Assembly (NCBI GenBank): GCA_043228905.1
Contig: JBHGNT010000002.1
Span: 3,906,001-3,970,000 of the forward strand
Origin: Azolla caroliniana
Lineage: Eukaryota; Plantae; Polypodiophyta
Length of the DNA: 64,000 nucleotides
Direction: 5' to 3'
The notes beneath the pieces are model-generated. The model saw only the letters and a program-made list of their open reading frames with translations. It was not told the DNA's origin and did not search any database. The translations under genes were made by a program, and so were the position numbers. The number at the start of each line of letters is the position of its first letter. The first letter of the stretch is position 1. Shown here piece after piece: positions 1 through 39,200 of this stretch.

Positions 1-1006
1 TCATTCGAGGGTGGGGTGAAAGCTATCTCGAGTAGGATATCTTATGTGGGTATAATTTCATGGTATGGTGTTTCATTTTTGAAGGTTGGATAAGGTGTTT
101 GCTAGGTTTTCGGTAGTTGGATTATTTTTGTGACAGGTTGAGAGAGTAGATTTCATGATTTAGGAAGTAAAAGAGGAAGTGTGATTAGTGTACTATGATT
201 GTGTGTTTTCTTGCTTAACTTGGATTAGCAGTATATGATACATTTATTTTTGATGTTTTTATTCTTCTTCTGTTGCTCAATAAATAAATATTGTTCTTAG
301 TAGATCTATGTTTCTTAGAACTCTCATTTTATATTGTTGCCTTTTTTCTTCTTTTTTCAGAAAATGTTGCAAGTAATGCGTATATCATGTGTTTTGAACC
401 TCCTAGTTTGTTGCCCTTTTTTTCCATCTTCTCAAATAATGTTTTAGGTAATATAAATGTGATTTGTTTAGCCTCTCAATTTGCTGCTTTATTCTCAAAG
501 AAATGTTGTTTCCTCCTCTGTTTCAGAAATGTTGTTGGCAATTTATATATGATATGTGTATATCATGTGTTTTGAACCTCCTAGTTTGTTAGAACTCTCT
601 GTTTCCTACCTTTATAGAAATGTTGCAGGCTATATGTATATGAAGTTTGTTAAACTTCTTTGCTGATTTTTTCCTCCATTTCTTCAAGCAAAATTGCAGG
701 TAATATTTATATGATGTTTGTTAACCTCTCCGTTTGTTGTTGCATTTTTCCGCTTTTGTTATCAAGAAATGTATTGATGTTTGTTTAGCTTCTCTGTTTG
801 CGGCAAGTATATAAAGTTTGTTGAACATCTTAGTATGTTATGGCGTTTCGTTTTTCTTTCAGGAAATGTTGCAGGCTATGTATATATAAACATTGGTTTA
901 AAACTCTCATTTGTTACCTTCAAGTTTTCAAGAAATGATTTAGGCAATATGTTTGAACATGAAATTTGTTAACTTTCCTATCATTGATGATGTGAGAAAA
1001 CAGCAT
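1..1006 (+). repeat. Segmental duplicate copy A (intron ending at the PurK exon acceptor), homologous to 15527-16663
   Basis: Collinear high-identity match, e.g. GCTCAATAAATAAATATTGTTCTTAGTAGATCTATGTTTCTTAGAACTCTC in both copies. Both end in GAGAAAACAG|CAT and then diverge. Confidence 0.95.
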
Positions 1007-4000
1007 GGAGATATGTAGATCTCCCGTTGGATTATGCGATACCATCATAGGGGTTCTTGGAGGAGGACAACTCGGCAGGATGCTTTGTCAAGCTGCTTCT
1101 TCTATGGGGCTGAAAATAGCTGTTCTTGATCCTGAAAGAGACTGTCCAGCTAGTAGTATTGCATACAAACATATTATTGGTAGCTTTCGAGATACAAGTA
1201 CTGTTCGGAAATTCGTTAAAGAGTAATACTACAGTTTTTATCTCTTTCCTTTTCTTAATGTTTTTAAATATCGGAAGGGGATCCTCATGTATTTCATGTT
1301 GTTTTAAGACACCATGCAATACATGAGCATCCCAGCTTTAAAAGAAAAGAATTGCTTTGTAAACATGAGATTTTAATATGTTTAATGATGTTTTAATGAG
1401 TTTTTTAAAGAAAAAATGGCCCAAAGGTTTTTTAAATATTAGCACAGGAAGATCACGTGTATTGTGGCGTTTTAACTAGTTCCAATAGAGCATCATGTGA
1501 TGCATGAGCATCTCAATATTAAAGAAATTCGTTTTTGGTCAAAATGATTCTTATAAATAAGAATGGGATTTTCATATGTTTCATGGCATCACATCGTTAA
1601 AAGACATTTTATTTTATCCAAATATTTCTAGACAAAAACAAGTGATGTTCATGTATTTTAGATGTTTTAATGGTAGGTGTGGAGTATTGACCGTTGAAAT
1701 TGAGCATGTTGATGTCAACACACTTGAAGAACTTGAAAGAGAGGGTATTGATATCGAACCGAAGCCCTTCACTATACGCATTATTCAGGTGCAACCTCCT
1801 GTGCAAGATCACATATCCTGTTGTGTTCTTAAAGTCTTATGGACCTTTTTAACGTCTCACAGTTTGCAAGAAAGTACTTACAATGATGCAATAATGCAGG
1901 ACAAATATCTTCAGAAGGTACATTTCAAGCAACATGATGTCGCACTGGCTGACTTCCAAAAGGTCTGGATTCACTGCTTAGTTTGGAATAATAATCATTA
2001 CCGCCATTTCGGTGTGGAATGCCGCATTTTAGTTCTCAATGACAATATTTATACTTTACAGATAGAGGATTTACAAAGTGCGGAGGAAGCAGGATCTCTA
2101 TTTGGTTATCCCTTGATGGTGAAGAGCAGATACCTTGCATATGATGGACGTGGAAATGCAGTGGCTCATAGCAAAGGAGACCTACTTCAGGCTATCTCTT
2201 GTAAGCTTTCATGGGAATGTTAAGGTATGTATTCATACATCATTTTTTAAGTTTATAATACTAAAACACCAGGAATGTCTATTACAGCATTAGGAGGATT
2301 CGAGCATGGTCTATACGCAGAAAAATGGGCTCCGTTTGTCAAGGTACAGATCATATTTGATGCATTTGTGTAGAAAATTTTGACCTGATGCAATGAGTGA
2401 GAAACAAGTGCACTCTTTGCACTAGTAGAGTTAACATGTGGTTAATCAGAGTAGGATGAAAGCCATAATATCCAGAATTTCTAGCACAATGCCCACAATA
2501 CAGTACATTCTATTTTCTAGTACAATGCATGGATTTTCTTCAAATTCTCATGCATTTCTAGTTGAGCCGGTGCACTTTGTTTTCATACTTCTTTGGCTGT
2601 TCCTACTTGTCATAAATATTTATAAAATCAGGATTCATTGAATTGCATTCACCATTGCAAGTAGCTATAAATAAATATTAAATTGAAATCATCTCTTATA
2701 TGCAAAGCAAAAATTGTTGATTGTTGATTAGAAATATGTACTTCTTATGACTGTATATACATCATTAGAACAATAATCACGAGACATTTCTTCAATTTTA
2801 TAATTGATTATATTTGTGTGAATCTTAGGAGTTGTCTGTCATGGTAGCAAGGGGAAGAGATGGTAGCTTGGACTGCTTTCCCGTCGTCGAAACCATTCAT
2901 AAGTAAGAGAAATCATTTAATAATATTTATATGCTTTCCTCACTGTGTTTTTTTTCATGTGAATATGTTTGGTTAACTCACTTGCAGAGAGAACATTTGC
3001 CATATTGTTGAGGCTCCTGCACAAATATCTGAAAAGGTGGCTCATACTGCAATTCAAGTAGCAAAGGCAGCAGTAGGATCTCTTAAAGGTGCTGGCATTT
3101 TTGGTGTTGAACTGTTTCTGCTTGCAGATGGGCAGGTACTATAATTGAGCCACATTGGCTCCTTTCTATTTGAACTGAATTTCATATTTGAATTGTGGAA
3201 GAGTTTCCCTATATTTGGTTCTCCTTGAGTACCTACGAGTGCTGCTGCTATTGTCATTAGATGAGTCATGAATAATACTCAAATTGCTCATCTATGTCAA
3301 GGGCTCTCACGAACTGAATGGGGTTACACCTCAATGGGCTTAGGAGTGAGGCCAGACAGTCACGTATTCAATTCCTCAACACGATAGAAATCTAACATTG
3401 TTGTAAGTTCGTCCCAGGTGGGATTTGGCTGAAAATACAGGGTAATAAAGAGATGGCTTACGACTAGGGTAAAACCACCAGATATCGAATGCCAAACCTG
3501 TTCAAAATGCTGAAGTGACCAATAGTTGCATCCATGCGTATCTAGTGTAATGTCTGGTAAAATAAAGTAAAATCTAATGTACCTAACCTAGGTAGCAGAC
3601 CTATATAACTAGGCTGCGACAATGGATACAAGTAATATGTGGCTTATAATGTGTGAAACAAATAAATCTGGGTAGATAGGTCATGGTTGGATCAGACCCT
3701 CAACACTCTCATTGAATGATACCGCATAATGCCAATACTCCTGAGGAATGGTCAATCTCTGGCAATGATTCTCTGCAATGTAAGAGGGTGATGTCTTTTA
3801 TTTGATCATCCAAATTATTTGGGATGTTGGAACAGGTACCAATGTGTCAATTGCACCCTTGTTCAATGCGTTAATGTATTACCAGCGATTTATTGTAATG
3901 TTTCTTAACACCTTTATGGAAAAGAGAGTTTTGCAAAAAATAGAGCGGCAGAGAGATTAATGGTCTTTTTGCAGGTTCTATTGAATGAAGTGGCCCCTCG

Positions 4001-5009
4001 GCCACATAATAGTGGACACTATACTATTGAAGCATCTTATTGTTCCCAGTATGAGCAACATCTTCGTGCTGTCTTGGGGCTTCCATTAGGCCTTTCGGCC
4101 ATGAAAGTTCCTGTAGCAATAATGTACAATCTCCTCGGTGAAGATGATGTATGCTCCATATTTTCTTATATGGTTTTTCAGTGGGTGCATAGAAAGCATT
4201 CATTTTTGTTGCAATCTACAAAAGTTGTATTGAGCATCATTTTTTGTTTTAATTCAGCCACCAGGCGGATAGTGTGGTTTATTTATTTTTGTTTTGTAAG
4301 AGTAATCTTTGTTAGAGGAATGCAATATTGTTGTCCATTGCAGTGCATGTTTTTTCTAAGCTTTTGTGTTTTGTGTTTAGGATAATCTCAAAAAGCATTT
4401 TTTTTCAATTCTTATTATAGGGGGAAGCAGGCTTTGCTATTGCTCAAGAAAAAATGAGAAAAGCTATAAGTATTTCTGGTGCAAGTGTTCACTGGTATGG
4501 GAAACCAGGTTGGTATTCTAGTCTGCTCTATTATTTCTGCGATCTCTTATTGTATACATGTTTGTGTACCACATGAGAAAATATTTGTGATTTTTAATTC
4601 CCAGTTGAATCTCGTTGAATTTTGTCCTCACTGCCCCCTCATTTCTTTTTTTTAAATGTGAGTGATCAAAAGCTTATATTTTTCTACATGTGCCATGCAG
4701 TCTAATTCTTAATGTTTATTTAGCTTGTTTGCCCGTATTGGCCAGGGTGCTGAACTTTTCCTGTTTGAAGTTCCCTTCCATTTTAAAGATTTGTTGTGCT
4801 TTTATCTAGAAATGTTTGCTTGTATTGTACAGAGTTTTGACTTTTCCCTGTTGGATTTTAAACATTACCTTGATATGCATTTGCATCATGCAGAAATGAG
4901 AAAGAAGAGGAAGATGGGTCATATCACTGTCGTGGGCCAATCAGTTCCTGTTGTGAGGAACAAAGTGAAAGCGATTATCGGAAATGAAGCTCCAGATTCC
5001 TGGTCTTGA
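1004..5009 (+). CDS. purK: PurK-only gene (N5-CAIR synthetase, ATP-grasp half of plant AIR carboxylase); 5'-partial, first exon presumably upstream of the window
   Basis: Ten exons join in frame through GT-AG introns: 1004-1222, 1677-1788, 1900-1962, 2062-2200, 2288-2343, 2829-2902, 2988-3135, 3975-4148, 4421-4508, 4894-5009. PurK motifs GVLGGGQLGRM, LTVEIEHV, AYDGRGN, NEVAPRPHNSGH, HWYGKP and RKMGHIT are present. TGA at 5007-5009 follows the PurK domain, with no PurE exons nearby. Confidence 0.93.
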
Positions 5010-5097
5010 GGATACCCAAAAACAGGGAAATTTTCCATTTACGTGCCAGAGTCCATAAAAGATCATTGGATGCATCTCTCTAGACTGCCAATTTCGT

Positions 5098-5483
5098 CAC
5101 ATGCATGACTAACTAACTGCCCACAATGCCATTCATTGTGCTTAGTTGGAGACGAGTGTGTCAACGATGGCTTGGTTGTTCCATTGATGTTGTGGGTTCC
5201 TTTGAAGAAACAACGTACAGAGCAGATCACACATGTCTTCGGACCTATGATTCTTCCACATACGTGACTAACTGATTGCTCACAATGTCATTTGTCGCAA
5301 TTACTTGGAGATTGTGTGACAATGATGGCGTGGATGTGCTGTTGATGCTGTGAATTCCATCAAATAACAACATACATTGTAGATCAAAGTGGTGAGTTTG
5401 CATGGGCGGATCAATCACCGAATGTCATTTGTCAAAATTACTTGGAGATTGCGTGACAATGATAGCCTGGTTGTTCCATTGAT
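5098..5483. repeat. Degenerate tandem repeat, about 160-bp unit, about 2.5 copies
   Basis: AATG(C/T)CATT...TTGGAGA...GATGGC...GTTCCATTGAT-like blocks recur near 5100, 5260 and 5420. Confidence 0.75.
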
Positions 5484-6539
5484 TTAGTATTCCTAAAAGT
5501 TACAAACTCTTTTGTCTATTATACAAGTTTTGTCAAAGTTACAATGCTTGATTGCAGATTTTTTGAGTTTTCATTTGAGGTTGTTTGTAAATATGTAGGA
5601 AATAAGCATATTGCCAAAGTTAATTTAAAGACAAGTGGATGGTGGAGAGGCAAATGCAAGGCCCATGATGTGGCGGTGGTGTGTTGTAGATATGGCTTGG
5701 TGTTCCATCTTGCATTTACAGTTGAAGTATTTATTTGGAGGGTCATGATTGACCCTTTAGAGATGCCTCGAGAAAGCAAACTATTGTTGTTGGAATGTGT
5801 TGCGTGCATTGTTTGCACGATATGACCGTAACATAGTAAGCATTGAACTTCATACTTATCAAAAGCTTATGAAGGCATTGGGAAATTTTTGCATGAATAT
5901 GTAATTAAGTGTTAATTAGCTTCTTCTATGATAGGAGGGTGCTAGTGAGAAATTGACGCGATCCCCACCAGGAAAGTGAGCGGTTGTGATCCCCATTGAA
6001 ATTAGAAGGTGAACAATTGAAATCGGTCCTCGCCAAAGGAAAGTGGAGCCAAACTTAAACCAAAATGAAAATGGAGTGCAAGCAAACAATGATTCGATTC
6101 CCACCAAGAAAGTGAGTAATTGTAACCCCCATCAAAACTGGGAAGGTGAGCGATTGAAATCAATCCTCATGAAAATCGTGATGCAAAACAATACTAGATG
6201 ATGACAGTGACAATGAAGAGGACGGAACAATGATGACAATGAAAGACCATGCAAAGTAATGTTGATAATAATGAAGGTTGGGCGAAGTAGCGTTTGATGA
6301 AGACAACGAGAGCTGTTGAAAATGATGATGTCGAAGATGAGGCAACGAAGATGATGATGAGGTGGAAACAATGACTATGACTATGGTGACGATGGTGTCT
6401 CTAGAAGCAATGACGACTATGACGACAATGTCTCTAAAACCGAGGATGTCGATTATGGTAACTCTGTAAGCAAGGATGGTGATGATGGTAACTCTAGAAG
6501 CAAGGCCGATGACGACAATGGGTGATGCTTCTAGTGTGA

Positions 6540-7546
6540 AGAGTTCCGAGTCAACGGTTGGTGTATTTGTGACAATATTAAGTGTTGGGTCCTTAAGAAA
6601 TACCTTTTGGACACTTTGGTGACATCGATGCTTCTATATGGAGTGAAAGTATGGGGTGGTAGCATCCCTAAATCTACTTGGAAAGAGTTTGAAAATGTCC
6701 AAAACAATTTTCTTACAAATTTTCTATAAGCTAAAAAACAAACACCATACGTCCTTGTCTTCCTTGAGACGGGATCACTTCCCATTGAGATCATGGCCAT
6801 GGAACGGGTTGTTGAATACATGGTTAAGGCTCAAAAAAGTCCCTCACATCGACTTCCTAGAATTGCATGGGAAGTAAGCAAATAGATCCAGCAAAATTTT
6901 GTGTTCTCGTTGGATGCAAGATATAAAAAAGTGGTTTTGGTAGATGGTAGTAACACATTTGCTTCATGATGCATTACTAGATTCCTATGTAAACAAGGCT
7001 TTTTGCAATGCGAATGTATCATGATATAGGAAAAATGTGGAGGCTCACACTTCACACATTATACTACACATGTTGAACCTAACTACAAAATCGTATTCTT
7101 TGCGGAACTGGGAAATCGTACACAACGATACATGTTAGAGCCCATTCTGTTGGTTTCCATTTGAACCATTGTTTCCATGCAACTTAGCTTTCATGCATTG
7201 TGATGTGAGATAGGGCGTTGGTGCACAAGTGATGAGAGTGGTCGACGATGCACACTTTGCCTTAAACAAGTTTGATAGTTTAAGTTAAGTATCACACTTT
7301 GATACAATGTTCTACCTTTAATCATATTCGACCATGCTTTCCACACATCTTTGACCAAACCTAATCCTTGCATTAATTTCTCTCACAACCATAATGTGCA
7401 CTCTCGATTGGAACATTCATTGGTACGATTCTTGAACATCGAGAGTCACTACTCACTTTTACACATATAACGTGAAATGTAATATTTTTAATCTTATAGG
7501 TCATATTTGACCACTAAAGATGATAATATAATCTCTCTCTCTCTCT
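6540..7546 (+). mobile_element. Degraded 3' fragment of a non-LTR retrotransposon (RTE-like) ending in a (CT)n tail
   Basis: Broken reading frame LLYGVKVWG...FENVQNNFL...LETGSLPIE resembles the post-RT region of LINE ORF2. It contains stops and ends in a CT microsatellite at about 7533-7546. Confidence 0.6.
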
Positions 7547-9515
7547 CCCCTTTGGTCCCATCTATGGGTTATCAGAGCCGGAGTTGTATGCGCTTCGTGT
7601 ATACATCGACAAAAACACGACAAAAGGGTTCATTCGCCACTCAAAATCTTTGGTTGGGGCACCAATCTTGTTCATCAAGAACAAGGATGGCTCCTTGTCT
7701 CCATGTGTCGACTATTGAGGACTTAACAAGGTAACGATCCACAATCACTACCCATTACCATTAATTCCAGAGCTCTTGCACCACCTTCGGATCAGACAAG
7801 TGTTCTCAAAAATCGATCTACAAGAGGCTTACAATTTAGTGCATATCTGTTCGGGAGACGAATGGAATATGACATTCCAAAGTCAATATAAGTTGTTCGA
7901 GTATCGTGTCATGCCAATTGGTCTAACCAACGCCCCTACCATATTCCAACACATGATGAATGATATCTTTTGGGAGTATTTTGACCAATTCATGGTGGCC
8001 TATTTAGATGACATTGTCATCTATTCTCTGGATCTCGACACCTATTAGCAACATGTCTGCTTGGTGTTAAGACTTTGGGAACACAATCTTTATGCCAAAT
8101 ATGAAATGTGCACGTTCGATTCAACCTTTTGTGGAATTTCTGGGGTACATTGTGTCCCCCGATGGTATTTCCATGGATCAATGGGAAGTGGCTGCAATTC
8201 AACAATGGAAACCTCCCACCTAGGTAAGAGATGTTCAATGCTTTCTTGGTTTTGCAAATTTTTGTCGTCGATTTATTAGAGGGTTCTCCAGTATTGTGCA
8301 ATTGTTGGTTGCTTTCACTCGTAAGGACCAACCTTTCTATCAGACGTTGGTAGAACAAACTGCATTCATGTTGCTTAAATTTGCCTTTATGACCGCCCCA
8401 ATACTCCTTCACCCCGACCTAATGAAGCCATTCATAGTGGAAACAGATGCGCTAGATTATGCTATCGGCGTTCTCCTCTCAAAGCTTGACAACGATGGGG
8501 TACACCACTCGGTAGCTTATGACTCGTGCAAGTTCACAACTCCTGAAATCAACTACCCAATCTATGACAATGAACTTGCAATCATTATATATGTTTTCGA
8601 GGAATGGAGGCCTCACCTAGCTGGGGCCCACCTAACCGACCACAAAAACCTTCTCTATTTTACTTCTACCCGCACCTTGAATCATCGACAAGCTCAATGG
8701 TCAAATTTCTTGCCTGACTATCACTTCGAAATCACATTTCGTCTAGGACACACATAGCAAAGCTGATGCCCTTTCTAGGTGGCCGATGCTAACACCTTGC
8801 CCCGGGGACAAGGCATACAACCAACAGTCCCAATGTCTGTTGACACCTAGCCAAGTTCAAATCTTCGCAACATATGTACTCCAAGACGAGACCCTCCTTG
8901 TTGAAATCATCACGACCACTTCAATCGATCACTTTGCTCAAGAAATCAATGCATGTTTCGATGACCTAACTCATTGATCACATCGACATGACCTTGAAAA
9001 AGTTTCCTTTCGAGATGGGTTACACCAGGAACAATCTAGTCTACGTCCTGGAAGGGTTGTGCCAAGTTTGCCTCATAACTGAATGCCACAATGGTTCGCT
9101 TGCTGACCATTTTGGGGTCGCCAACACTTTAGAACTGATCTCTCGGACCTATTGTTGGCCCCAACAGTGGAAGCTAGTCAAAGACTTCATCAAGACTTGT
9201 GACATCTGTGCTCGATCCAAAACAACCCATCATCGCCCATATGGACTACTTCGACCTCTCCCACTCCCGGATCAGCCGTGGTCATCCATATCGATGGACT
9301 TGATCATCGACTTGCCACCATCTAAGGGACATGATTGCATCATGGTAGTCGTGGACTGATTTACCAAAATGGCGCATTTTATACCATGTTCCAAAGTCAT
9401 CTCAAGCCTAGAGACAATGAATCTAATCTTAGCGAATGTTGTGTGCCTCCATGGGTTACATGTTGACATTTTCTTCCATCATGGTGCACCATTTATTTCC
9501 CATTTTTGGAAACGT
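7547..9515 (+). mobile_element. Degraded Ty3/Gypsy pol (RT, RNase H, integrase; Tf1/Tcn1-like)
   Basis: [31 protein letters not shown] (RT); FIVETDALDYAIG, TDHKNL (RNase H); H..HFG...CDIC and WSSISMDLI (integrase). Many stops and frameshifts; cut at 9515 inside integrase. Confidence 0.92.
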
Positions 9516-11080
9516 TGTCGTGGAAATCCACGCGTGCGTGTCGGCTTGGGCGGGACCACGGGGGTCTTTGACTAGGGAGTAAAAGAAGGGATAAAATGGG
9601 AGCTTAACCGAGGCACAAAGCCACAATATGATTACAATCACGGCCATATAGGCCGGACTCAAGCACAACTAGAAAACCTAACCGGATAGGAAGAAGAACT
9701 AAACCGTAATCGAGAGGAAGGAAAATGATATGAAAGGGGAACCTAAAACCGAAACCCTAAAACGAAATAAGGATAAGGTGAAGAAGAAAACCTAACGGTC
9801 TACCTCTAGCGACAAAATGACGACCCCTTCAATGGTGACCCTGGTGGTCCTGTCGTGGATCCTACACGTACTCATGGAATACTGGGACAATGGTCTGCCT
9901 TTTCCTTCCTTAGCTTCTTCCCTTGAGAAGTCTTCAAGCACCACTGGCCAAAATCCGGTGTCGGTTCTAGAGCCAATGCTCTTCTCTTTGCCGACACGAA
10001 TGCCAGTCGGCGCCGAGTAATGGACGGTCTCTACGTGACGCGCCACAGTCTCATCCATCAGTATTTTCATCCCTCCTCAACCGATGTTCATCTCGAGGGG
10101 CTTGCGTGTCTCGCTTGCATGTACCTGACCGTTCCATAGGTACATGACATTGCTCTTAAGTGCGTCGGTGAAGTCAGCACACTCCTTTCGAATGTGATCG
10201 ATAACATCTCAACTCTTCAAGAGCCGCGCTCCCGGATGACCCTTCAACCACGTTGGTCGGAATTGGGCCCGGCTCGAGCCGTCTTCTTGTCTCATTCGAT
10301 AGAGCTGGAATCTCCTCCGCCATCCTTCTCGCAGCCAAGCCGATCGACGATGACCCCTCATCATTCCAATCCCTCCGTTTGTCGAAACAACTGCATATTC
10401 TCTTAACTACAACCCAATCGGTTGTGAGGCCGTCGTCTGTCTCGAGGAGGAGACCTACCTTTTTGCGATCACGCGAGTCTATCGATTTTATGAAAAGAAA
10501 GACCTTGCTCGTATTGAGCACGGTTCATTCCAACGCCGAAAGACAGTGCAAACCGCTTCTTAAATTCCTAGAGAAGCGTTGAGGTGTTCCTTCCTTTTTT
10601 GGGGCTCTTGACCCACTCCATGAGCCCCCATTTCGACATTCGGAGCGAGTCGTTGATGTCGTACCTCTTGAGGATTTGCTCCTCGAACTCCGACCAGTTA
10701 CGAAAGTTGGCTTTTATTTAAAGCACCTTCGCGTGGATGCTCAGCGTGATGACTTGGGGAAATCTGGAAAGCCGCATGTCCTCTAGGATGTCCCACATTA
10801 GCATTTCAGCCTTATAGGCCTCCAAGTAGCATGCCACGTCTTTACCATTAAATCGGTCTGTTGTGCCGACTATCGTTTCAATAGCCTTGTCGAGGCCACC
10901 CGCGCTTTCCCAAGCATTCACCAAGCGATCGACAAACACCGCCATCGTTTCCGCAAGCTTGCTTCCCCTCATCTCGACTCCTTTGGCGCCTCTTTCACGT
11001 CGGGTTCACCAAAGATGTCATAGTATTCCGCATGTACGTGTCAGAATGAGACAAGACCACCAGGGACTTGGACCAAGGAG

Positions 11081-11137
<57 letters not shown>

Positions 11138-12079
11138 CCGGTTCGACCACTAGATATCTTCGCAGGCAAATGGGACCTCACATGTAATCTGATCCGGACC
11201 AATTACAGGATTCCGAATAATGAGCACATGGTGTCGAAGAAATCCTGGGGTATGCGTTGAAACAAGGTGGAACCACCGGAATCTCGGACAAAGGAGCCGA
11301 CAAGGGAAGAGAGGTTGTTAGGATATCTTCGCCAGAGCGTGGTCTGGACACATATCCGATCCGGACCAGTCTCCGGATGCAGGATGGTGAGCACACGAGC
11401 TTAGACACGAGTACTGTTCCAAACTTGTTGCTTGTAGCAAGCGGCGAGCACATGGACTCGGGACTCAGACAAACGCGTAGGCAGATGGGAATAGAATGGA
11501 GATGCGAACCCAACACAGAGAGACCAATTGGATACAACAAAAACGAAATGGCATTAACAGGGAAGAGGGATACAACCGGACTCGGCCGGTGACAGAGCTT
11601 CGAGCTTCCCACACTCACACACACAGACGGTAATGAGCCTTCGATCGGGAGCACACAGGCTACCAGAGCGAAACGGAGGCCTCATAACACAATGATAGAA
11701 AATAGAGAACTGAAATCTTTAGAGCTCGGTCCAGTAGCACTTCGTTCTCCAAAATCGTGGATACCTCTCTAAGTCTTCTCTCCCCTTTTTATATCTCAAG
11801 GAGAGAGAGGGGAGTCGTTACATCAGGCCGTTAAGACGGTCGCTTTCAATCCTTGATTCTCTCCTCAATCTCCTCCGGTCAATTACATTTATTCCCGTAT
11901 TTATTTGGCCATAAAGTACCTATTAAATCACTCCTACGTAGTATTCATTAACACTCAAACTAACACTATGATACTTACACATGTTTGTACATAAAGACTA
12001 GTTGGTGTGCATTCGTGTACACCCCTGTTCATGCGAACCCGACTCCCTTTTCTCCATATGGCCGGAATCCTTCATGACA
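9516..12079 (-). mobile_element. LTR-retrotransposon-derived element carrying a decayed gag only, bounded by TG...CA termini
   Basis: Termini TGTCGTGGA (9516) and TTCATGACA (12079) form an imperfect inverted repeat. Gag-like fragments lie on the minus strand at 10972-9792 (DRFNGKDVACYLEAY, KVFLFIKSID, partial knuckle HIRKEC). There is a TATA-like TATAAAAAGGGG on the minus strand near 11790 and (GA)n at 11085-11131. No clean TSD. Confidence 0.65.
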
Positions 12080-12082
12080 ACG

Positions 12083-12350
12083 GGCTCGGAGACTCGGATA
12101 TGCACGTAAGCAAGAGGAAGCGGAGGTGAGAATGTGGATAGAAACAGAGAGACGCACAACACCATAGAGAAATACGGAAAGATAATCGATTAAATTTGTA
12201 ATAGAGGGAGATACACTTGGAGTCTATTGGTAACAAAGCTTCCAGCTCTTAACACACCCACGTAGGCACTAGTGAGCCTCTGATCGGGAGCACACGGGCT
12301 TCCAACGCAAACAAAGGCTTCTAAATGTGTAGATCGATAAAGAACTGATA
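12083..12350 (-). mobile_element. Diverged partial copy of the non-coding part of the 9516-12079 element
   Basis: GAGCC...GATCGGGAGCACAC(A/G)GGCT occurs at about 11635 and about 12275, with collinear similarity to about 11455-11720. Confidence 0.6.
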
Positions 12351-12424
12351 GTGAAGCGTACACCAAGGACCTAAAAAATTATTGTTCGATTGTGAATTTA
12401 TTTTTCATTTTGAGAATTTATGTG

Positions 12425-12810
12425 AAAATATAGTTGTATTTTGGTAGTTTAGTCGAAATTGTAGGGGTATTGTGGTAATCTACAACAATATAGGGTATTA
12501 TGGTAACTTACAATGGGGTTTTGATGGTAATTTATAGGAAAATGTATGGGATATATTATGCTAAATTATATGAAAATGAAGGGGAATTTGGGTAATTTAC
12601 AAAAATGTAGAGGCAGGATATAAGAAAAATAGGGATATTCTGGTAAATTATGCAAAATGTGGGGGCATTTGGAAAATTTACAGAAAATATAGGGATATCC
12701 TGGCAATTTATATGACAATGCAGCGGTATTTTGGTAATTTATACAAAAAATGTAGGAGCATTCTGGTAGTTTTACAAACGTATATAGGGGGCATTTTGGT
12801 AATTTACACG
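12425..12810. repeat. Minisatellite, about 31-bp unit, about 13 degenerate copies
   Basis: Consensus approximately AAAATGTAGGGGTATTTTGGTAATTTACA(G), repeated head to tail. Confidence 0.85.
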
Positions 12811-13089
12811 AATTGTTGTTTCGGAAAAAGGAGAAAGAACGAAGTAATCTAGGGCTCGGACGGCCCTAAAGTGGTTTGGGGGAATCTTAGACGATCAGGG
12901 CCGTCCACATAATTAATATTTACATAAATAATATAAAACCGGAAATAAAACAGAGAAATATAGAAAAGAAAAAAACTAAACGAGAAAAAGAAAAACTAAA
13001 AATAAAAAAAGAAAAAAGAAGAAGAGAGAGAGAGAGAGAGAGGGAGAAAGAAAGAAAGAAGAAAGAAAGATATATTAACGTCTTCTAAG

Positions 13090-13489
13090 GCCAAAATTGG
13101 CCCATGAGACAGTTGGTTTACAACAAAAATGGGTATTTATCCAATCATCAAAACTAAAATAAAAGTAAAGTAAAAATAGCTTAAGCTAAAAGAGTTCTAA
13201 AAGAGAGAGAGATAAAGAAAACCCTAACTTTGGGCAAAACTAAGGGCGGGCGGATCAGAGCCGTCCAATACTCGTTATCTAAAATCAAAAAGCAAAGCCC
13301 TAAACCCTAAACGCAAAACGCAAAACGCAGAAAGCAAAACGCAAAAAGCCCAAAATAAGGATTGTCTCTCTCTTTCTCTTCTGATTTTAGCTGAGGATTA
13401 TTTCATCAAACAGTGACGAGCCTGTGGGTTAGGGTTAGGGTTTGCATTCGAGGATTATTTTAGAGTGAAAGGAAGAGCGCAAGACAGAG
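13090..13489 (+). promoter_or_regulatory. Putative promoter/5' UTR of the PurE gene with telo-boxes and site II-like motifs
   Basis: AAACCCTAA at 13219-13227 and 13302-13310; GGGTTAGGGTTAGGGTTT at 13426-13443; GGCCCA at 13099-13104; AGCCCA at 13347-13352; CT-rich patch at about 13365-13382. This combination is typical of plant housekeeping promoters. Confidence 0.6.
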
Positions 13490-16400
13490 ATGGAGTCGTC
13501 TTGCTGCCATCCTCCGCTATTTCTGAGCTTTGGCGACCTTGTAACTTCTTCAACCTCCTCCTCCTGCTTTTTTGCTTCTTCTTCAAAACCGACTTCTTTT
13601 CAGCGTATCTTCTGCAATGGCAGCAGCCTGATCAGAAGCTCTCCACATCGTTGTCAACAACAACAACAACATCATCATCATCATCATCATCATCATCATA
13701 GTCGTCGTCATCATCATCATCGCTATAAAATGAGTACTTGTGCTGATCATGTATCTCCTAGAGCCGTTTCCAACGGTGAACAACAGACATTGTACCTCTC
13801 CAAAACGCATCCTTGCTTTCTCAGTTTTAAGTTGATGGTTTTGCATGTTTTCTTTCTCTCTTCTTGTTCCAAGAAATTTTGATAATTTTTTCTTTTTTAT
13901 ATTCTCTTCTTTTCTCGATAAATGTTGCACATCTGAGGGAAAAAGTATTGAAAGGAAGAACTCAAATGATTTATGACGGAAATCTGGTTTAAATACATGT
14001 TCAATTAATTTGGTTATTATACAAGCATTTTGCCTCCCATGAACAAGAGTTAAAATCATTTTTTTCACAGAATCCCTATTTTTCCTTTTAAAATCTAATG
14101 ATTGCTACATGGGTACAAGTACAATGGACTTGAAGGGGTATTCTATAGTGCTCATATAATTTGTAATTTAGATGGTTATTTGTGAATTGATAAGCTTGAA
14201 GCTTGTGAGCACCATTTCTACTTTGGAGCTGGGATGAACTTGGTGACATAGTATTCTACTTGGGGTGGATGTGGGTGCATTGTTGATTGTGAGGATTGGA
14301 GGTTTAACATTGGTTCTTCTACAAGTTCTTTGATGAGTTTTTGTAGTCAACGTGTTTTGTATTTTCTCTATCCTCTGGTGTGTTGATAAGTGTAATACAA
14401 GACCGAGCGCCAATTTAAATTACTGTGGCCATACTCTTTTTTAGCAGCTGCCATGAATTCTGCTTCTGTGGAAGAAAGTTTACGCTGTCTGGTTTCTGAA
14501 ATTGCTATGATACTGATCCTCCAGCCAAAGTAAACATAAAACCTGTTGTGGATTGCCTCGTGTCTAAGTTGCCATTGTAGTCTCATTCACACCATCCATG
14601 TAGGCCAAAATGTTCCGACAAGTTTACTCGATGATGTGCATGTTTGAGGTACCTTATTACTTTGTTTAATGTATTCCAATCAGGTGGTCTTGATTTTTCA
14701 TACATCTTAAAGATATCTCCTGATGAAACATAGATCAAGTTTTCTACAGGAAACAAAGTAGCATATATTGTTTAGTTCCTCTTCATGAGGAATTGCCTTC
14801 AGTTCTATATTTATTTTTTATTGAGAATTTATCTGACCCTAGTTTTAGACCATGCTTGGAAGGAATTAATGCTTGTTTGCAATCCATCATGTCATGCTTC
14901 GTAAGTATACCTCCATACCTATGCTGTGGCAAAGTTGATGTCGCTGAATCTTATTGAAAGTTCTAATTGGACCTATTTGATGGTTTCAATATAATTGCGA
15001 AGATATATTATGTCATCATCATAATTGGTAACATAGGATCTTCAAAGTATTGGGGTTATTCTATATAGATTGCAATGTCTAGGTTTCCATTTAGAAAGGC
15101 TGTTTGAATGTCTAGTAGATGAATCAACAGGTTTAGTTGATACAAATACCTAAAAGAACACAAAATGTTGTCATTGAAAGTATTGGAGAATAATTAGAAG
15201 AGCTTGATGTCGATGTAAGGTACATCGTGGTCGAGTTTTCTTCTCAGTAGTCATTTTTGTAAATTTGACTACTTTGTGATTGATTAATATCGATGTATCT
15301 TTTTTGTTAGTAGAATTCATTTCTGATCTCATTACCACTTCCCATTGAGGTTCTTCACGCCCTTGATAAGCCTTTGTTCATCGAATCAACCACTTATTAG
15401 AGCATACTAGCCATGTGGTTCTGTGACTTGTTTTCACAATTGTCTTGAAATTTGAATGTCTAGAGTTTGGTGAAAGCTTTCTCGAGTAGGATATCTTATG
15501 TGGGTATAATTTCATGGTATGGTGCTTCATTCTAGGGTGGGTTGGAAGCTATCTCGAGTAGTATATCTTACTTGGGTATAATTTCATGGTTTGGTGCTTC
15601 ATTATTGAAGGTTGGGTAGGGTGTTTGCTAGGTTTTCCGTAGTTGGATTATTTTTGTGACAGGTTGAGAGTGAGTAGACTTCATGATTTAGGAAGTTAAA
15701 GAGGAAGTGTGATTAATGTACTATGATTGTGTGTTTTCTTGCATAACTTGGGTTAGTAGTATATGATACATTTATTTTTGTTGTTTTTATTCTTCTTCTT
15801 TTGCTCAATAAATAAATATTGTTCTTAGTAGATCTATGTTTCTTAGAACTCTCATTTTATATTGTTGCCTTTTTTCTTCTTTTTTTAGAAAATGTTGCAA
15901 GTAATGCGTATATCATGTGTTTTGAACCTCCTAGTTTGTTGCCCTTTTTTCCATCTTCTCAAATAATGTTTTAGGTAATATAAATGTGATTTGTTTAGCC
16001 TCTCAATTTGCTGCTTTATTCTCAAAGAAATGTTGTTTCCTCCTCTGTTTCAGAAATGTTGTTGGCAATTTATATATGATATGCGTATATCATGTGTTTT
16101 GAACCTCCTAGTTTGTTAGAACTCTCTGTTTCCTACCTTTATAGAAATGTTGCAGGCTATATGTATATGAAGTTTGTTAAAACTCTTTGTTGATTATTTC
16201 CCCCATTTCTTCAAGCAAAATTGCAGGTAATATTTATATGATGTTTTTTAACCTCTCCATTTGTTGTTGCATTTTTCCGCTTTTGTTATCAAGAATTGTA
16301 TTGATGTTTGTTTAGGTTCTCTGTTGGCTGCAATTAGTATGTTATTGGCTTTTGTTTTCTTTCAAGAAATGTTGCAGGTTATGTATATATAAACATTGGT

Positions 16401-17775
16401 TTAAAACTCTCCATTTGTTGTTGCATTTTTCCGCTTTTGTTATCAAGAATTGTATTGATGTTTGTTTAGGTTCTCTGTTGGCTGCAATTAGTATGTTATT
16501 GGCTTTTGTTTTCTTTCAAGAAATGTTGCAGGTTATGTATATATAAACATTGGTTTAAAACTCTCATTTGTTGCCTTCAATTTTTCAAGAAATGATTTAG
16601 GCAATATGTGTGGAAACGAAATTTGTTAACCTTCCGATCCTTGATGATGCGAGAAAACAGCATTTTATCTGGAACAGAAGTGCTAGTTGGCATCATCATG
16701 GGGTCGGACTCTGATTTGCCAGTAATGAAAGCTTCAGCAGAGATACTTGAAACATTTAATGTAGCGTATGAAGTAAGCAAATTTCATTTGTATTCCATTA
16801 TTTTCATGTGTATACAAGGTTGAGTGCCCTAAACTGGTGTCTTGTTATGATTTTGTGAACTGTACAGTTGACTGTAGTCTCTGCACATAGGACACCTGAA
16901 AGAATGGTTGAGTATGCTAAAAGTGCACATGTACGAGGAATTAAGGTGATTATAGCTGGCGCTGGTGGTGCTGCTCATTTACCTGGTAAATATGACTTGC
17001 TTGCGCTACTTACTTGCCATTGATAGATGGTCTGTGTATGAAGACATAATAAAGTCAATTGACTGGGTTTGAAAATTTCTCATCAGGCATGGTAGCAGCA
17101 ATGACCCCTCTTCCGGTTATTGGTGTTCCTGTCAGAGGCTCATCGCTGGATGGTTTAGACTCACTTCTATCTATTGTTCAGGTACTCACATCTTTGATTA
17201 ACAGAAAAGTTGACAATAGCTCTAGGTATTACCAAAATCTAGGCACACTCATATATCTGTTTACACTTACCATGCAACTATCTATACTTACTCATACGTC
17301 TAACTATACTTTCCACAATGTAGGTCTTTGATATTAAACATCTATTTCTGCACTGAATAAGATTAGTGGCCAGCTATTAGTGGCAGCTATATCTGATACT
17401 AGAAAAATAACAATTTCTTGGATTGATAAAATGCATACATTTTAAACCATTTCTATTTCATGATATTTGACCGTAATATATCTAAGTAAAGTTTGTGAAT
17501 GAGCACAGATGCCAACAGGGGTACCTGTTGCTACAGTGGCAATCAATAATGCAATGAATGCAGGATTACTGGCAGTTCGAATACTGAGCTCCTCCGATGT
17601 TAATCTGAGAAATAAGTATGCATCTTTACTTATGCTTTCAAATCAATTCACGAGAGTAATCTTTGCTCATACTAAAGTATGTTGCAGAATATTGGTGCAC
17701 CAAAACAATATGAAAAGTACAGTGCTGGAGAAAGCTGAAAGGTTGGAAGATGTTGGGTGGCAAGCTTACTCTTGA
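13490..17775 (+). CDS. purE: PurE-only gene (class I N5-CAIR mutase) with its own transit-peptide-like exon
   Basis: Exons 13490-13791 (Ser-rich transit-like peptide; phase-2 donor TT|GTACCT matches the acceptor at 16661; alternative phase-1 pair 13775/16678), 16661-16772, 16868-16985, 17087-17181, 17509-17615, 17688-17775. Motifs [30 protein letters not shown] and [11 protein letters not shown]. PurE exons are secure; the exon-1 join is inferred. Confidence 0.88.
15527..16663 (+). repeat. Segmental duplicate copy B, homologous to 1-1006, with a private 154-bp tandem duplication
   Basis: Collinear with 1-1006. 16253-16406 is repeated at 16407-16560, whereas copy A has one unit. Confidence 0.95.
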
Positions 17776-19429
17776 AATCCATTCTTTTGAAGAATCCATA
17801 CAGAGATGTACAATATACTAGGGTTACATTATTGGAGATGTCCAATATACAAGTAGAACACATTGAAGAGGTCAAAAATCTGTAAGCCTAGTTGAATCTG
17901 GTATAATATTGAACATGAAATAAAAAAATCTGGTATAATGGAGCTTTCATACTGAGAATGAAATCACCTCAGTAGCATATAACTAGGCTGATTTAACTTA
18001 CAGCCAAAGCTGAGAAGCGGGTTTGTAATCATTTTTGAAATGACATTTTTTTATGCAATAATATAATTAAATTCGGATGATGATCTTCTTTCTTGTGTGA
18101 CTTCACTTTCCATTAGGAAATGAATCTGGGTTGGATATGAGAAGAGCAGAAGACGTCCAAAAATCTTAAGAGCAGTTGAATCTGATATAAACATGGCTCC
18201 AAGTTCAATGTGAAATCATCTATGTAGCACTGAATTTGATTTAGTTTTCAGCCGGATCTTGGAAGCTTTTACAAATATTTCTGATATGGCATTTTCATAG
18301 AATAATCTACTTAAAATTGGATTATAATATTCTCTGGTATAATTTGATTGCCATGAGAAACGAAACTGGGGTGGATATGACAAATACATAACCTTTGAAG
18401 GAAATTGAATTGTAACATTTTTGAACACTTTCATTATTTCAATCTTGTATTGCTTACTTTGTTCTGGCTTCACTATTTCTGGGATTATTTGCTAGTTATA
18501 GTTTTTCACCACTCATGGTCTTGTCCGCATAGTACTATGCTGTTCCGTGTTTTGTTATGTTCTCTGGTATTCTAGGTAGAAACGAAAGAAACATCATGTG
18601 ACATTTGATGAATCAGTGACAATTCTATTGCTGCTGAGATATATGCGATGGAATGATATTCCAGCAGCTGCTCAATCTCTGTGTTCCCTGATTGTGATCT
18701 ATTTTATGGTAACATTACTACTGTTTCTGCCTCCCTGAGGTTACAAATTGTCAAATGATGCAAGCATACTATTATCCTCCTTTCAATTGAAGATGAAAGA
18801 TGATCATGGCCTTCTTGTAAAATGCATTATATTGTACCATATATCTGGTATATAATCGTAGGGTCAATTTCCTTGCTATCTCTGTATACCTTTGTATGTA
18901 TATCCAATATGTGGAGTCAATTTGTCGGGTCTTTACATTCCTACTACTACGCGTGCTAATCTTGCTGCAAGTTTGCTCTTAACATCCCCACCATGAGCCC
19001 AAGCGAGATAAGTTTAGAAGTCAACTAGTTATGTTGTGCTAGAAGTTTCCATGGACATCCATAGCTTCAAAGGCACGTGTAGAGTGTTAAATGTTAAGTG
19101 CGAAGTCATGGAGGACCTAGAGAAATGTTGGACCGTTGTAATAGCACCAAGAGTCAAACGTTCCCACCCATGTGCACTTAGTTAGACAATCTTTGCCGTC
19201 ATACCATCTCAACATATTGGTTACATGATGAGGTTTGTTGAGTCTTTGATTGGGGTGATTGCACCTACCATTTAGAAAATTTACAACATGAGGGAATTCT
19301 ATAATCGGAGATAAGGAACAGTTCGTTGTAGTAGATCAGTTGTTTCTCAACAAGAGCATAATAGATGAAGTATTGATTCATCTCCATGCCCACATATCTT
19401 ATAAGTAACAACAATTACATGATTGTAGC

Positions 19430-20130: not shown

Positions 20131-23100
20131 ATGGCCACTACCAGCTCCTTCACAAAATGGTCTCCTCCGGATTTCCTCAGCTTCTCCCACCACTCCAGGC
20201 CAAAGCTCATGCCCGTCTCTTCTCTGACCAATATTGCTCTGTCCACAGGTGAGTAAATAAATATATGATTGTTTCTTATTTTATTCCCAATAACCCATTT
20301 TAAAAATTGATTTATCACTCTTTCTGTGTTTCTAAAGGAATTTAGTATTTGTATAGACATCCTGAATCAGGGTCTTTGTAAACAATTTCATTCTAGTGAG
20401 CTAATGAAGAGAGAAAAGCCAGTGAAAGTTTTGCATAAGCATTATGTGGGCATCAGAAATGGGGCTTTCAATCTATGGTTTCCAAATGATTGAAAGAATA
20501 TATACACATGTCTATATATGTGTATACATATGCACATGCATAAATACATAAATACATAAATACATAAATACATAAATAGATATGTATATATAAGGATATC
20601 ATATGCATAGGATTCAACGAATAGTAATAACAATTATATGCCAGTAGCTGTATTTAATCAATGGGATTAATTAGGGTTTCATTGGTAAAAATTAAATATT
20701 GATCCAATGATATATAAACATTAATCTAATAAATAACCAATAATTAGTAATAGTAGTAAAATCTAATTATAGAGTACCAATATACATCTATGTATATATA
20801 TTTAGATCAAGATCTTTCATGATGATAAATTGTTGTCGTTGACAACAGTATATATTCATGTTTTTAAAATGGCATAATTTTATTCTAATGCATTTTGACT
20901 CACCACAAAGTATTTAAATAACTTTCTAAACTCAAGTACTTAGTAATTATAGAAAAACAAACCTTACACAAAAAAACGACTCCAGAAAGAATGTAGTTGA
21001 TTTAACACCCGAAAACATTTGTCAAGAGGAAGTCCTAGTACAAAAAGAAGACTCTATATGCTTCGAAAAAACTCTCTTATTAGAGAGAAGGGAGCTCTAG
21101 ATACCAGTAGTGATTGGGTAGCTAGCCCTTTATATACCGATTAACCTTGCCTCTGTATAGAGTCCAAACTATGACCGATGACCTAGTTGACCGACCTCTA
21201 ATAAATAATTTGGCAATTATTGTTGCCAACATTAATGTGTCATGCATACTAGACTACTACTAAATGATAGTGTGTGATGCTTTGCATGAAAAGTGTAATG
21301 GCAATATGTTTGGTATGTCAATATTGGATATGTTTCGCAACTCGTTGTTGGAAAAAGGTCATTGACATAGTTGGATGCGTTACAATGCAGTATTACACCA
21401 ATTAATCGGATAGACAGAAGAACATGTTGGGCAAACGTAAGAACTTGCCACTGAAACTTATGGTTTTGGATGACAATCATGACATGTAGCTTGTAAAGTT
21501 TATCACATTAAGAAACAATGTACTGGGCCTAAACCTTATTTGAAACCATGATGAGACCTGATCCACCTTGATATAATAATTTTGTGGGAATCTACAGGGT
21601 TGTAAAAATTTTGGTTTTACAACTAGTATATATCCTCCATGTGAAAAATTAACTTAAGGGAATGACACCAAAATAATCTTAAAGTTTAGCCTATCCATTT
21701 AATAGCCCTAAGGTTTCAAACTTTACAAGAATGCCCCAATTTTGGACCATAGAACGGTATTTTGGAAATGTCCAAAACGTTAGGGGTAATTTGGAGATTG
21801 TAGACTTAGGATGAGCTCAATACTTGTGCTTACTCCGACCTATGGCTACAATCTCCAAATTATCCCTAACGTTTTGCAAATGTCCAAAATGTTAGGGCTA
21901 ATTGGGAGATTGTAGCCATAGGTATCTTGGCAGTTAGCAAATGGTAATGGTTTTTTCTGCATGCATGTGAAAATATAACGAGTCATTTCCATCAGGCGGA
22001 TATGAGATTACTTTTCATAGTTTTATTTCCCTTTTTGTATCTAAATTGTAGCAAATCAGCCTCATCTGCGTGCTTTCTTTTAGATATGAGTTCCAGCGAT
22101 GTTGTACGTAGAAAAAACCAAGGTTGCTTTGTGTGTGCATTTCATAGCAGAATGGTCGTGTTTCTTTATATGGTCATACTATATGTTCATAATATATATT
22201 TTCACATACAGCTGGGCCATGTATGAGACTTGTTAAAGAAGAAAATGCTTATGCGGTTCGAGCAACAGTGGAACAGGCTTTGGGTAATGATCTAGAGAAC
22301 AGGGGTGATACAAATGATGATGACGATGTTTGTGAACTTGTGAGTAGGCTTGAGCTTACCTTAGGGGCAGGGGAAGATGCAATGGATGCTTACCTAGTGA
22401 AAGCCATGAAGAACAACAATGGTGCTGCTGTGTTACTCTTAACTGATGATTTCGGTTATAATGACAATGATACCCGGGACTTCGCTTATCGGTTGTCTTG
22501 TTTCGGCTACAAGTATGTTCTGCTTCTTTCTTTTGTTCATATTAATTTATATTACACTTGTGTTTGATCCACTAAAGAATAATAAATGTACAAAAATTCC
22601 CATAATTACTTCATCTTTTTTGTAGTGATACCTTATGCTACTACTTTTGTAGTGATAACTTATGCTACTACAATATGAGGATGTTAGTGAACAAAGTTCC
22701 ATTACACCTGGAAAACTCACTACTACAAATAAAAATGTTAAATACACAAATGGCTTGTAACCCATATGATTTCTGAGTTTAAGGATTTCTCTCTTGAGTT
22801 CAATGTGTTTTGCGGTAACAGAATGACCAAATTTTGTCTCTGCTATATCGTAGTGTTCTTGTGCCTGATCTATTTCGTGGAAGGCCATGGATGAAAGATA
22901 ACCCAATGAACGTGTATGAGGATTGGGCGGCTACTCATCCTCTCGAAAGGATTGTAAAGGACATAGACACCGCGGCAAATTGGTTGGTGGAAGAGATAGC
23001 TGCTGCAGGAATGAACATGAAAGTGGGACTCATTGGTTTCTCATTAGGAGGTGGCGCTATATTTGAGGTGTTGGCCAGAGATGATGGCCGACGGTTTATT

Positions 23101-23376
23101 ACCGCAGCATGCTTCTATCCGACGAATTTCAACTCAACTATAACTACTAAGATACATGTTCCTTTGTTGTTTGTTTGTGGTGACAATGATGACAAGTGTT
23201 CCCCAGATATGCTCGAATCTATCGCAACTCAGATGAGGAACACCAAAACACTCTTGTATTCAGGACGTGGTCATGGCTTTGCTCATCGTCCTAAATCTCT
23301 TGAGGAGGATGGAGATGCTGAAAATGCCTTTCTGGCCATGAAATCATGGCTTCATGAAAAGTTGGTCGCTGTTTAA
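20131..23376 (+). CDS. Dienelactone hydrolase family alpha/beta-hydrolase (carboxymethylenebutenolidase homologue), probably plastid-targeted
   Basis: Exons 20131-20248 (MATTSSFTKWSPP..., phase 1), 22212-22512 and 22854-23376 join in frame with GT-AG. Motifs GYNVLVPDLFRG, GFSLGG, PLLFVCGDND and GHGFAHR. Confidence 0.88.
20960..21231 (-). mobile_element. Short LTR plus PBS remnant in intron 1 of the hydrolase gene
   Basis: The minus strand starts TGTTGGCA at 21231, and about 125 bp later has a tRNA-iMet-type PBS variant TGGTATCTAGAGC (21106-21094). Confidence 0.4.
21773..21922. repeat. Three copies of a 38-bp unit in forward/reverse/forward orientation (foldback)
   Basis: CAAAACGTTAGGGGTAATTTGGAGATTGTAGACTTAGG at 21773-21810, a near reverse complement at 21839-21876, and a third forward copy at 21885-21922. 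Confidence 0.9.
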
Positions 23377-27590: not shown

Positions 27591-27841
27591 ATCACCATTG
27601 CCATCCACACCCTCATCATCCTAGCTTCCTAGTTATTTCTCACCTATAAACATTGGGCAATGCAAAGAGAAATCTGCCAACCATTGGTCAATCATGAACA
27701 TATATACATGACATCTACATGAATTATCATCATCTCTAATTCATCACCAGATTCACCATTTCCATTACCAAAAATCCTCACTTGATTCATTAATCAGGTA
27801 ACCAAATCAAACCAAACCAAACCATAGAGGTGTACATATTC

Positions 27842-38389: not shown

Positions 38390-39200
38390 AGGATATAAGG
38401 TCACATTGGAAGTTGTAGGTGTTGGCTAAACAACCTTTGTTCAGATTAGATTGGGAACCAGTTGACAATTAGTGGACAGATCCATTCACTGGTAATAACT
38501 TTAATTTTTATCAAGTATTCTGTATAGTTGGGAAGACATGTGCTTTCGGATGGATAGACGGGATGTGTTACCAACTGCACTTAAATATTGGAGTCAGCAG
38601 GGTATTACTCCGAAGTTCTGGGTTGATCTATGGGCAAGAACTCAACCACAAAATATTGCATGTACAGTGGTTACTTGTACATCGAGCGTTACTTGTTGGC
38701 ACATGGTTGTGTAAGATGGGTGTATCCTCTAGTTGTGATTGCTATCATTTACAACCTGAAACTCAAAAACATTGTTTATGGGACTCCATTGAGTCTCTAC
38801 TGGTATGGCAATGCCTCCTTAGAATATTTGCTAAGTACTTTCCCGCATTGGTTTTCACATGGAGCCTGGTGGTTTGGACGTCACTTGTTCGCTCTACTTT
38901 CCATTACGACGTTGAATGTATGGACCATGGGTTTTACACCAAATCTAGAAGTGTTCGTCCACTTCCATTACTGTCTTTGCAGTAGTATGGGAGATACTGA
39001 GTAGTATTTGGTTGGACATGGTTCATACTTTAAAGGGTCAAGGGGATTGTATTGTTGAAGATTGTGACGATAAAACTGATCAATGTGATGAGTTTTTTAC
39101 CTTGTGGACAACTACTCCACTTATCACCTTCAAGAATGACACTCCTTTCTGGCATTTTCAACCACCAAAATGGTTGTTTCATTCGCCGATCACATAGTCT
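38390..39200 (+). mobile_element. Old degraded 3' fragment of a LINE related to the element at 41673-45975
   Basis: WLLVHRALLVGTWL...PETQKHCLW...FTWSLVVW aligns with WLLIHYALPVGDWL...TESILHLFW...FSWGAVLW of the young ORF2; frameshifted. Confidence 0.75.

Follow-up and report, generated by a model that had tools for sequence, protein, structure and literature searches.

A split AIR carboxylase in the fern Azolla caroliniana: adjacent PurK-only and PurE-only genes that probably arose by gene fission

A 64,000-nucleotide (nt) stretch of the Azolla caroliniana genome (GCA_043228905.1, contig JBHGNT010000002.1, forward strand 3,906,001-3,970,000; hereafter the window) carries the two domains of the bifunctional AIR carboxylase as separate units, and the arrangement is best read as a probable gene fission that turned one gene into two adjacent nuclear genes on the same strand, PurK-only and PurE-only. 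A fusion would place both domains in one open reading frame (ORF) and one mRNA; here the PurK frame is closed by a stop at 5007-5009, the next PurE exon lies 11.6 kb away, and PurE has an exon of its own at 13490-13791. What is found corresponds to duplication and degeneration, namely adjacent partial paralogues, a duplicated intron 1 and exon 1', and complementary losses. With regard to expression, the PurE-only mRNA was recovered in full and the PurK gene is represented by an exon-1-to-exon-2 junction in two relatives. The observation reported in the initial annotation was confirmed and its interpretation was largely right; the layout is not unique among plants, Sphagnum apparently being split as well.

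Both gene models were spliced in local scripts from the window sequence; the joined models were used for local translation, local BLAST against fetched proteins and the tree, and the database searches were run with exon pieces or stored proteins. The tree was built on a trimmed alignment, two exon-piece alignments being discarded as poorly aligned. Contigs from four putative RNA runs (X1, X2, X3 and X5), labelled as four different organisms (A, B, C and E), were aligned to positions 13200-18400. The features of the two genes, all on the plus strand, are as follows.

1-1003, plus strand: copy A of the duplication, forming the 3' portion of the first intron in the PurK-only gene, about 93% identical to 15527-16660, with the acceptor gagaaaacag/CAT.
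1004-5009, plus strand: PurK-only coding region in ten exons, from Pfam matches, tblastn collinearity, a GT..AG model and retained residues.
5007-5009, plus strand: TGA stop of PurK, at the codon that specifies a conserved linker Cys in fused fern proteins.
13219-13489, plus strand: promoter-like region and 5' untranslated region (UTR) preceding the PurE-only ATG; telo-box cores at 13219, 13302 and 13436.
13490-13791, plus strand: exon 1' of the PurE-only gene, with the ATG, a 100-residue Ser-rich N-terminal peptide, a poly-Gln/His tract and a phase-2 end.
13792-16660, plus strand: intron 1' (2869 nt), defined by an RNA joint, its last 1.1 kb (15527-16660) being copy B of the duplicated intron.
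16661-16677, plus strand: junction segment, now coding, made of CAT (the first 3 nt of PurK exon 2, duplicated) and a 14-nt tail of the old linker intron that ends in the old acceptor AG.
16661-17775, plus strand: five PurE exons (16661-16772, 16868-16984, 17086-17178, 17506-17615 and 17688-17775, stop at 17773-17775), from Pfam AIRC matches and RNA junctions.
17776-18066, plus strand: 3' UTR of the PurE-only mRNA, spliced contigs extending to 18004-18067.

The ten PurK exons in the window (1004-1222, 1677-1788, 1900-1962, 2062-2200, 2288-2343, 2829-2902, 2988-3135, 3975-4148, 4421-4508 and 4894-5009) all have GT..AG borders, and the spliced model encodes 396 amino acids (aa) up to the stop at 5007-5009. 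An intact ten-exon PurK had been proposed, and the ends assigned at 13490, 13791 and 5007-5009 were exact. On plus-strand ORFs, preATP-grasp (PF22660), ATP-grasp (PF02222) and PurK_C (PF17769) follow one another in order and at full length over 1005-5009; in tblastn searches with a 635-aa fused plant protein (P0035) and Selaginella P0041, PurK residues 79-461 were placed ungapped over 1029-4997. The 396-aa model is collinear with the 635-aa protein (63% identity over 378 aligned residues, one gap), and the best solved matches of the PurK profile were PurK enzymes.

The PurE gene has six exons including 13490-13791 and an intact spliced ORF of 273 aa, as expected from the earlier description of a five-exon PurE behind a promoter-like region and an ATG exon. 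AIRC (PF00731) pieces were matched at 16608-17775, four exon pieces spanning profile positions 2-139 of 148, and the PurE residues of the fused proteins matched 16635-17769 (tblastn, P0035 and P0041). Across the window, 12 copies of the telo-box core AAACCCTA were counted where 2.3 are expected; three of them fall within 270 nt upstream of the PurE-gene ATG, and the RNA contigs of the gene begin at approximately 13405-13460. Because the first 100 residues of the protein are Ser-rich with few acidic residues, and their MESSCC.. start resembles the MDCC../MECC.. N-termini of ferns, the peptide is predicted to direct the protein to plastids. The exon encoding it contains a CAA/CAT microsatellite (window 13645-13727; Q5 H10 .. 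H4 in the protein), at which reads appear cut, so that the tract is probably length-variable.

A PurE-only mRNA exists. Every PurE-gene junction (13791 to 16661, GT..AG with 2869 nt skipped; 16772 to 16868; 16984 to 17086; 17178 to 17506; 17615 to 17688) was found in RNA contigs, and all five introns were spliced out in contigs from the four organisms. The exon 1' joint 13791 to 16661 was present in contigs of X1, X5 and X2, and X3 carried a 13790 to 16660 variant. The X2 contig (929 nt) runs unbranched from exon 1' into the PurE exons and, over 875 aligned nt, departs from the window at a single position; the contigs of X1, X3 and X5 show a few percent divergence, most of it within the 3' UTR, and are therefore assigned to relatives. 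Among the coding differences between the window and the PurE transcripts of these relatives, four of the six in an incomplete list are synonymous.

The same runs reach the PurK gene, whose first exon lies outside the window, as had been claimed. In X1 and X5 an additional contig departs from the exon-1-like sequence at 13790, its loose end reading GCATGGAGATATGTAGATCTCCCGTTGGAT (GCATGGAGATATG..) and so matching the PurK exon that starts at 1004. In the X1 and X5 species, PurK therefore receives a paralogous exon 1 by splicing. From the register of the duplication, the corresponding exon in A. caroliniana should lie approximately 2 kb upstream of the window. The PurK-only mRNA would be polyadenylated after 5009. 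Of the two separate transcripts that were expected, the contigs cover that of PurE in full and, for PurK, the exon-1 junction in two relatives. X1 and X5 also contain two PurE-only junction variants at 13790-13791, in which exon 1' ends in T (Phe codon) or in G (Cys codon), the G-ending form being the same as that spliced to PurK; these variants point to alleles or homeologues, or else to exchange that continues between the copies of exon 1.

Next, the class of the PurE enzyme was considered. The translated model carries SAHRTP in the 40s loop and GGAAHLPG in the 70s loop, which we take to be the defining motifs of class I PurE, and scores 180-281 bits against solved N5-CAIR mutases (1o4v, 1qcz and 1u11) compared with 58-61 bits against 3rg8 and 5c5d, presumably class II PurE. 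Together with the AIRC coverage, the loops and scores support the earlier assignment to class I, that is, to the N5-CAIR mutases. By sequence, both proteins are ordinary members of PurK and class I PurE, and would have the corresponding enzyme activities.

The initial annotation took a fused plant protein as the starting state, and homologues agree with it. The profile search returned mostly fused plant proteins. Nearest to the window PurK are six fused proteins (P0366, P0365, P0373, P0376, P0370 and P0374; 75-80% identity), which form one clade with it in the tree (99/99 support); the window PurE is 82-86% identical to the PurE domains of this clade. The clade is termed fern-like since its linker motif and ..GW.AYS C-terminus recur in two entries from named ferns, P0348 of Adiantum nelumboides and P0312 of Ceratopteris richardii (a PurE-only entry without a traced locus). 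The fused form is found in these six proteins, in the Adiantum fragment and locus, in mosses other than Sphagnum, in liverworts and in seed plants, a distribution that supports the fused state as ancestral. Many PurE-only database entries of angiosperms are truncated isoform predictions or short paralogues. In Selaginella moellendorffii, two proteins of 771-776 aa (P0041/P0281; XP_024524038.1, XP_024524037.1) have PurK, a normal PurE and a second, divergent PurE-like domain, the latter with VSIGYSELPG in place of AGGAAHLPG.

Comparison with the fused ferns also places the PurK stop. Fern linkers read EAPxGWSC(E/D)...VGIIMGSD and the window PurK ends in EAPDSWS*, so that the TGA falls on the conserved Cys codon. 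Against the mRNA of the fused fern-like P0366, a 2-nt deletion (TCT TG[TG] A..) fits the window DNA better than a TGT to TGA change; against Adiantum, the two fit about equally. On both readings, loss of 2 nt and a nonsense change of the conserved Cys, the stop arose within the former linker-coding exon and is not a native terminus. We had also considered that the stop was reached by read-through past an old donor at 5003/5004, and rejected it: the fused ferns carry ..GWSC.., so the Trp-Ser codons are old coding sequence.

The same site bears on an unlikely alternative in which one fused gene still works, 5003/5004 being spliced over approximately 11.7 kb to 16661 and the PurE-only mRNA arising from an internal alternative promoter. 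The sequence TG/GTCTTG at 5002-5009 indeed offers a phase-2 GT that matches the phase-2 acceptor at 16661, but as a donor it is poor, with C at +3 and T at +5, and in the fern comparison the codons spanning the GT are old coding sequence, leaving no old donor there. In the four transcriptomes, moreover, the only loose ends at 16661-16678 came from exon-1-type exons, the X2 contig continues unbranched from exon 1' through the PurE exons, and no loose end at 16661-16678 corresponds to a PurK-to-PurE junction, a weak negative given that contigs lose rare forms.

The origin of the PurE-gene 5' part can be read from the duplicated segment. As had been proposed, the intron preceding the PurK exons recurs before PurE: window 1-1006 is repeated at 15527-16663 with approximately 93% identity (92.7% for 1-915 versus 15527-16419), copy B carrying an additional 154-nt tandem duplication (16246-16553), and the similarity ends 3 nt past the common acceptor ..gagaaaacag/CAT, at 1006 and 16663. 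The PurE gene splices at this duplicated intron-1 acceptor (16660/16661), and the mRNA contigs contain the junction segment that follows. Its 17 nt, divided as 1 + 15 + 1, link the phase-2 exon 1' in frame to an old phase-1 exon and add the residues F-I-L-S-G-T. In the Adiantum nelumboides locus the last PurK and first PurE exons are separated by an intron of approximately 100 nt in phase 1, with the acceptor AG 8 nt before the Val-Gly codons; the AG at window 16676-16677 stands at the same place and in the same phase. Tblastn with P0035 and P0041 found neither PurE relics in 5010-13400 nor PurK relics in 13800-16600.

An assembly artefact, in the form of a collapsed or mis-joined repeat, might be suspected from the 93% identity of the duplicated segments and their short tandem repeats. 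It is scarcely credible, because independent runs from four organisms contain mRNA in which exon 1' is joined to CATTTTATCTGGAACAG-AAGTG..., and such a joint requires the duplicated acceptor to abut the old intron tail. Since the intron copies are approximately 7% diverged and the split is common to the relatives, the data suggest that the split predates these relatives but is recent in terms of fern history; the dating could be distorted by gene conversion.

Both halves appear to be maintained. In a comparison with 117 plant proteins, two of 146 near-invariant columns (≥97% invariant) deviate in the window PurK and one of 48 in the window PurE, compared with 0-5 deviations in functional fused proteins. 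The intact models contain no stop, frameshift or broken splice site, and these observations agree with the earlier suggestion that both genes are under selection. Several points weigh against a completed fission. The PurK gene has its first exon and its promoter outside the window; the RNA contigs are restricted to the PurE half, the 3' end of the PurK transcript falling outside their span; the weak GT at 5004-5005 has a phase that suits splicing onto 16661 and makes a minor fused isoform conceivable among the rare forms that contigs lose; and the RNA label of the runs is a guess, which the 3-8x intron depth of the spliced contigs and their agreement across four organisms favour. Furthermore, the terminal branch of the window PurK in the tree is long (0.38), which may reflect altered constraint or simply a tree short of close relatives, and the search for paralogues was confined to the window, the rest of the genome lying outside it.

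The last two points would also suit a reading in which the halves are redundant partial copies drifting to pseudogenes while an intact fused paralogue elsewhere does the work, and partial PurE-only entries are frequent in plant annotations. We consider this very unlikely: both halves keep the near-invariant residues (144/146 and 47/48) with intact frames and splice sites, the form assembled in four organisms is PurE-only with no fused junction seen, and the arrangement is common to relatives that are approximately 5-8% diverged in the 3' UTR, time enough for a dead copy to decay.

Under the fission reading, the ancestral fern gene would have begun with a transit-peptide exon and intron 1, followed by ten exons for PurK and, beyond a short intron in the linker, five for PurE. 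In the most likely history, a partial tandem duplication left the upstream copy without PurE exons, and its frame would have been closed within the linker by the TGA. In the downstream copy, a deletion would have begun 3 nt into exon 2, ended 14 nt short of the old acceptor and removed all PurK exons; only in-frame outcomes would have been kept, and exon 1' could then be joined to the PurE exons in frame. The seemingly coincidental position of the breakpoint at a splice site is explained by an ordinary deletion of DNA in which a functional acceptor and the frame survived. Gene 1 (exon 1 upstream of the window plus 1004-5009) would thus encode the N5-CAIR synthetase PurK, and gene 2, with its own promoter-like region, duplicated transit-peptide exon and duplicated intron 1, a 273-aa precursor of a class I N5-CAIR mutase. 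Both proteins may be imported into plastids, with N5-CAIR passing between them by free diffusion or non-covalent hand-over.

In a competing route, a duplicated unit of promoter, exon 1 and intron 1 would have been inserted into the linker intron, with the same end state, the two routes differing only in sequence upstream of the window. Duplication with reciprocal domain loss, as first proposed, stands with respect to the two units, the duplicated segment and the complementary losses; as a route it is a candidate beside insertion of a 5' segment.

The split genes were compared with known arrangements of the two activities. With the plant and fungal fusion (P0035, P0366 and P0376; Arabidopsis At2g37690 and the yeast ADE2 type, which we take to be names for this bifunctional AIR carboxylase) they share two domains in the same chromosomal order (PurK 63-79% and PurE 82-86% identity), a homologous N-terminal peptide and a matching exon and phase layout around the linker, whereas in Azolla the frame is broken in the linker, PurE comes with a promoter-like region, an ATG exon and a copy of the intron of its own, and two polypeptides would result. 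Bacterial purE and purK (E. coli PurE 1qcz/1d7a, PurK 1b6s) likewise give two polypeptides, a class I mutase and an ATP-grasp synthetase; in contrast, the Azolla layout would be secondarily derived from the eukaryotic fusion, being nuclear and intron-rich, with a targeting peptide for each protein and separate transcription of each gene in place of an operon. Gene fission by duplication and complementary degeneration is exemplified by the Drosophila monkey-king family, which shows the same adjacent partial paralogues, common duplicated 5' segment and retention of complementary parts, but the Azolla case concerns a core metabolic enzyme with a labile common intermediate, and both of its products reuse the same organelle-targeting exon.

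Within land plants, Sphagnum-type sequences offer a parallel. A PurK-only protein (P0378, 526 aa, 47 members) ends in the linker, with an uninterrupted ORF on a 4.2-kb contig (L004:1102-2682), and intronless PurE-only genes (P0217/P0211) encode 261-282 aa (S. jensenii OZ023706.1, L001:10001-10786; L002:327-1175); no PurK was found within 10 kb of the S. jensenii PurE-only gene. Other mosses are fused (P0416, P0194). As in Azolla, PurK and PurE are separate with a related N-terminus (MGVL.. in Sphagnum) and PurK ends inside the linker, whereas the Sphagnum PurE is intronless and apart from PurK, and the N-terminal parts are more diverged, the shared parts being only approximately 70% identical in DNA. 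From these differences, the Sphagnum split is probably an independent, older event by a different route, possibly retroposition. Literature searches, of incomplete coverage, returned no report of a split plant AIR carboxylase.

The interval between the two genes and the rest of the window contain the following elements.

7776-9356, plus strand: degenerate Ty3-type retroelement remnants between the genes, with Pfam RVT_1, RT_RNaseH and Integrase_H2C2 on broken ORFs.

Ordinary genes of plants follow downstream: a dienelactone-hydrolase exon (22834-23373, plus strand), a GT47 exostosin (27830-29536, plus strand) and an intronless gene for a 953-aa PPR protein (35077-37935, minus strand). A 1359-aa uninterrupted LINE-type ORF (RVT_1 and zf-RVT; 41838-45914, minus strand) is possibly a young non-LTR retrotransposon, and a zf-RVT fragment is present at 38563-38982 (plus strand). 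Two minus-strand ORFs, 52202-53101 (300 aa) and 53493-55091 (533 aa), had no Pfam match at E ≤ 0.001, five long window ORFs had no counterpart in the protein collection searched, the annotated proteins of this species were absent from the two profile searches, so that a missing match in that collection is uninformative, and no tRNA genes were found in the window.

Channelling of unstable intermediates is the usual explanation for fusions between enzymes that act consecutively in a pathway, and one such intermediate is N5-CAIR, which PurK makes and class I PurE consumes. A well-documented reversal in a plant shows that a fusion of this sort is not irrevocable; here the two breakpoints can be read to the nucleotide, and related species have the split as well. 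It makes a compact case of fission, comprising a duplicated targeting exon, an in-frame deletion that exonised 14 nt of intron and a stop in the linker, of a kind that annotation pipelines are likely to call as truncated genes or to merge into a chimeric model. Matched fused and split enzymes from related ferns provide material for studies of kinetics, interaction and import. Tentatively, land plants may have lost the fusion at least twice, once in this fern lineage and independently in Sphagnum, with the ancestral transit-peptide exon reused for both halves each time; such reuse would be easy, since a joint between exon 1 and the first PurE exon can preserve the frame. If this is true, covalent linkage would be dispensable for handling labile N5-CAIR in plastids, and these lineages would constitute natural experiments on channelling and on the fixation of gene fissions.

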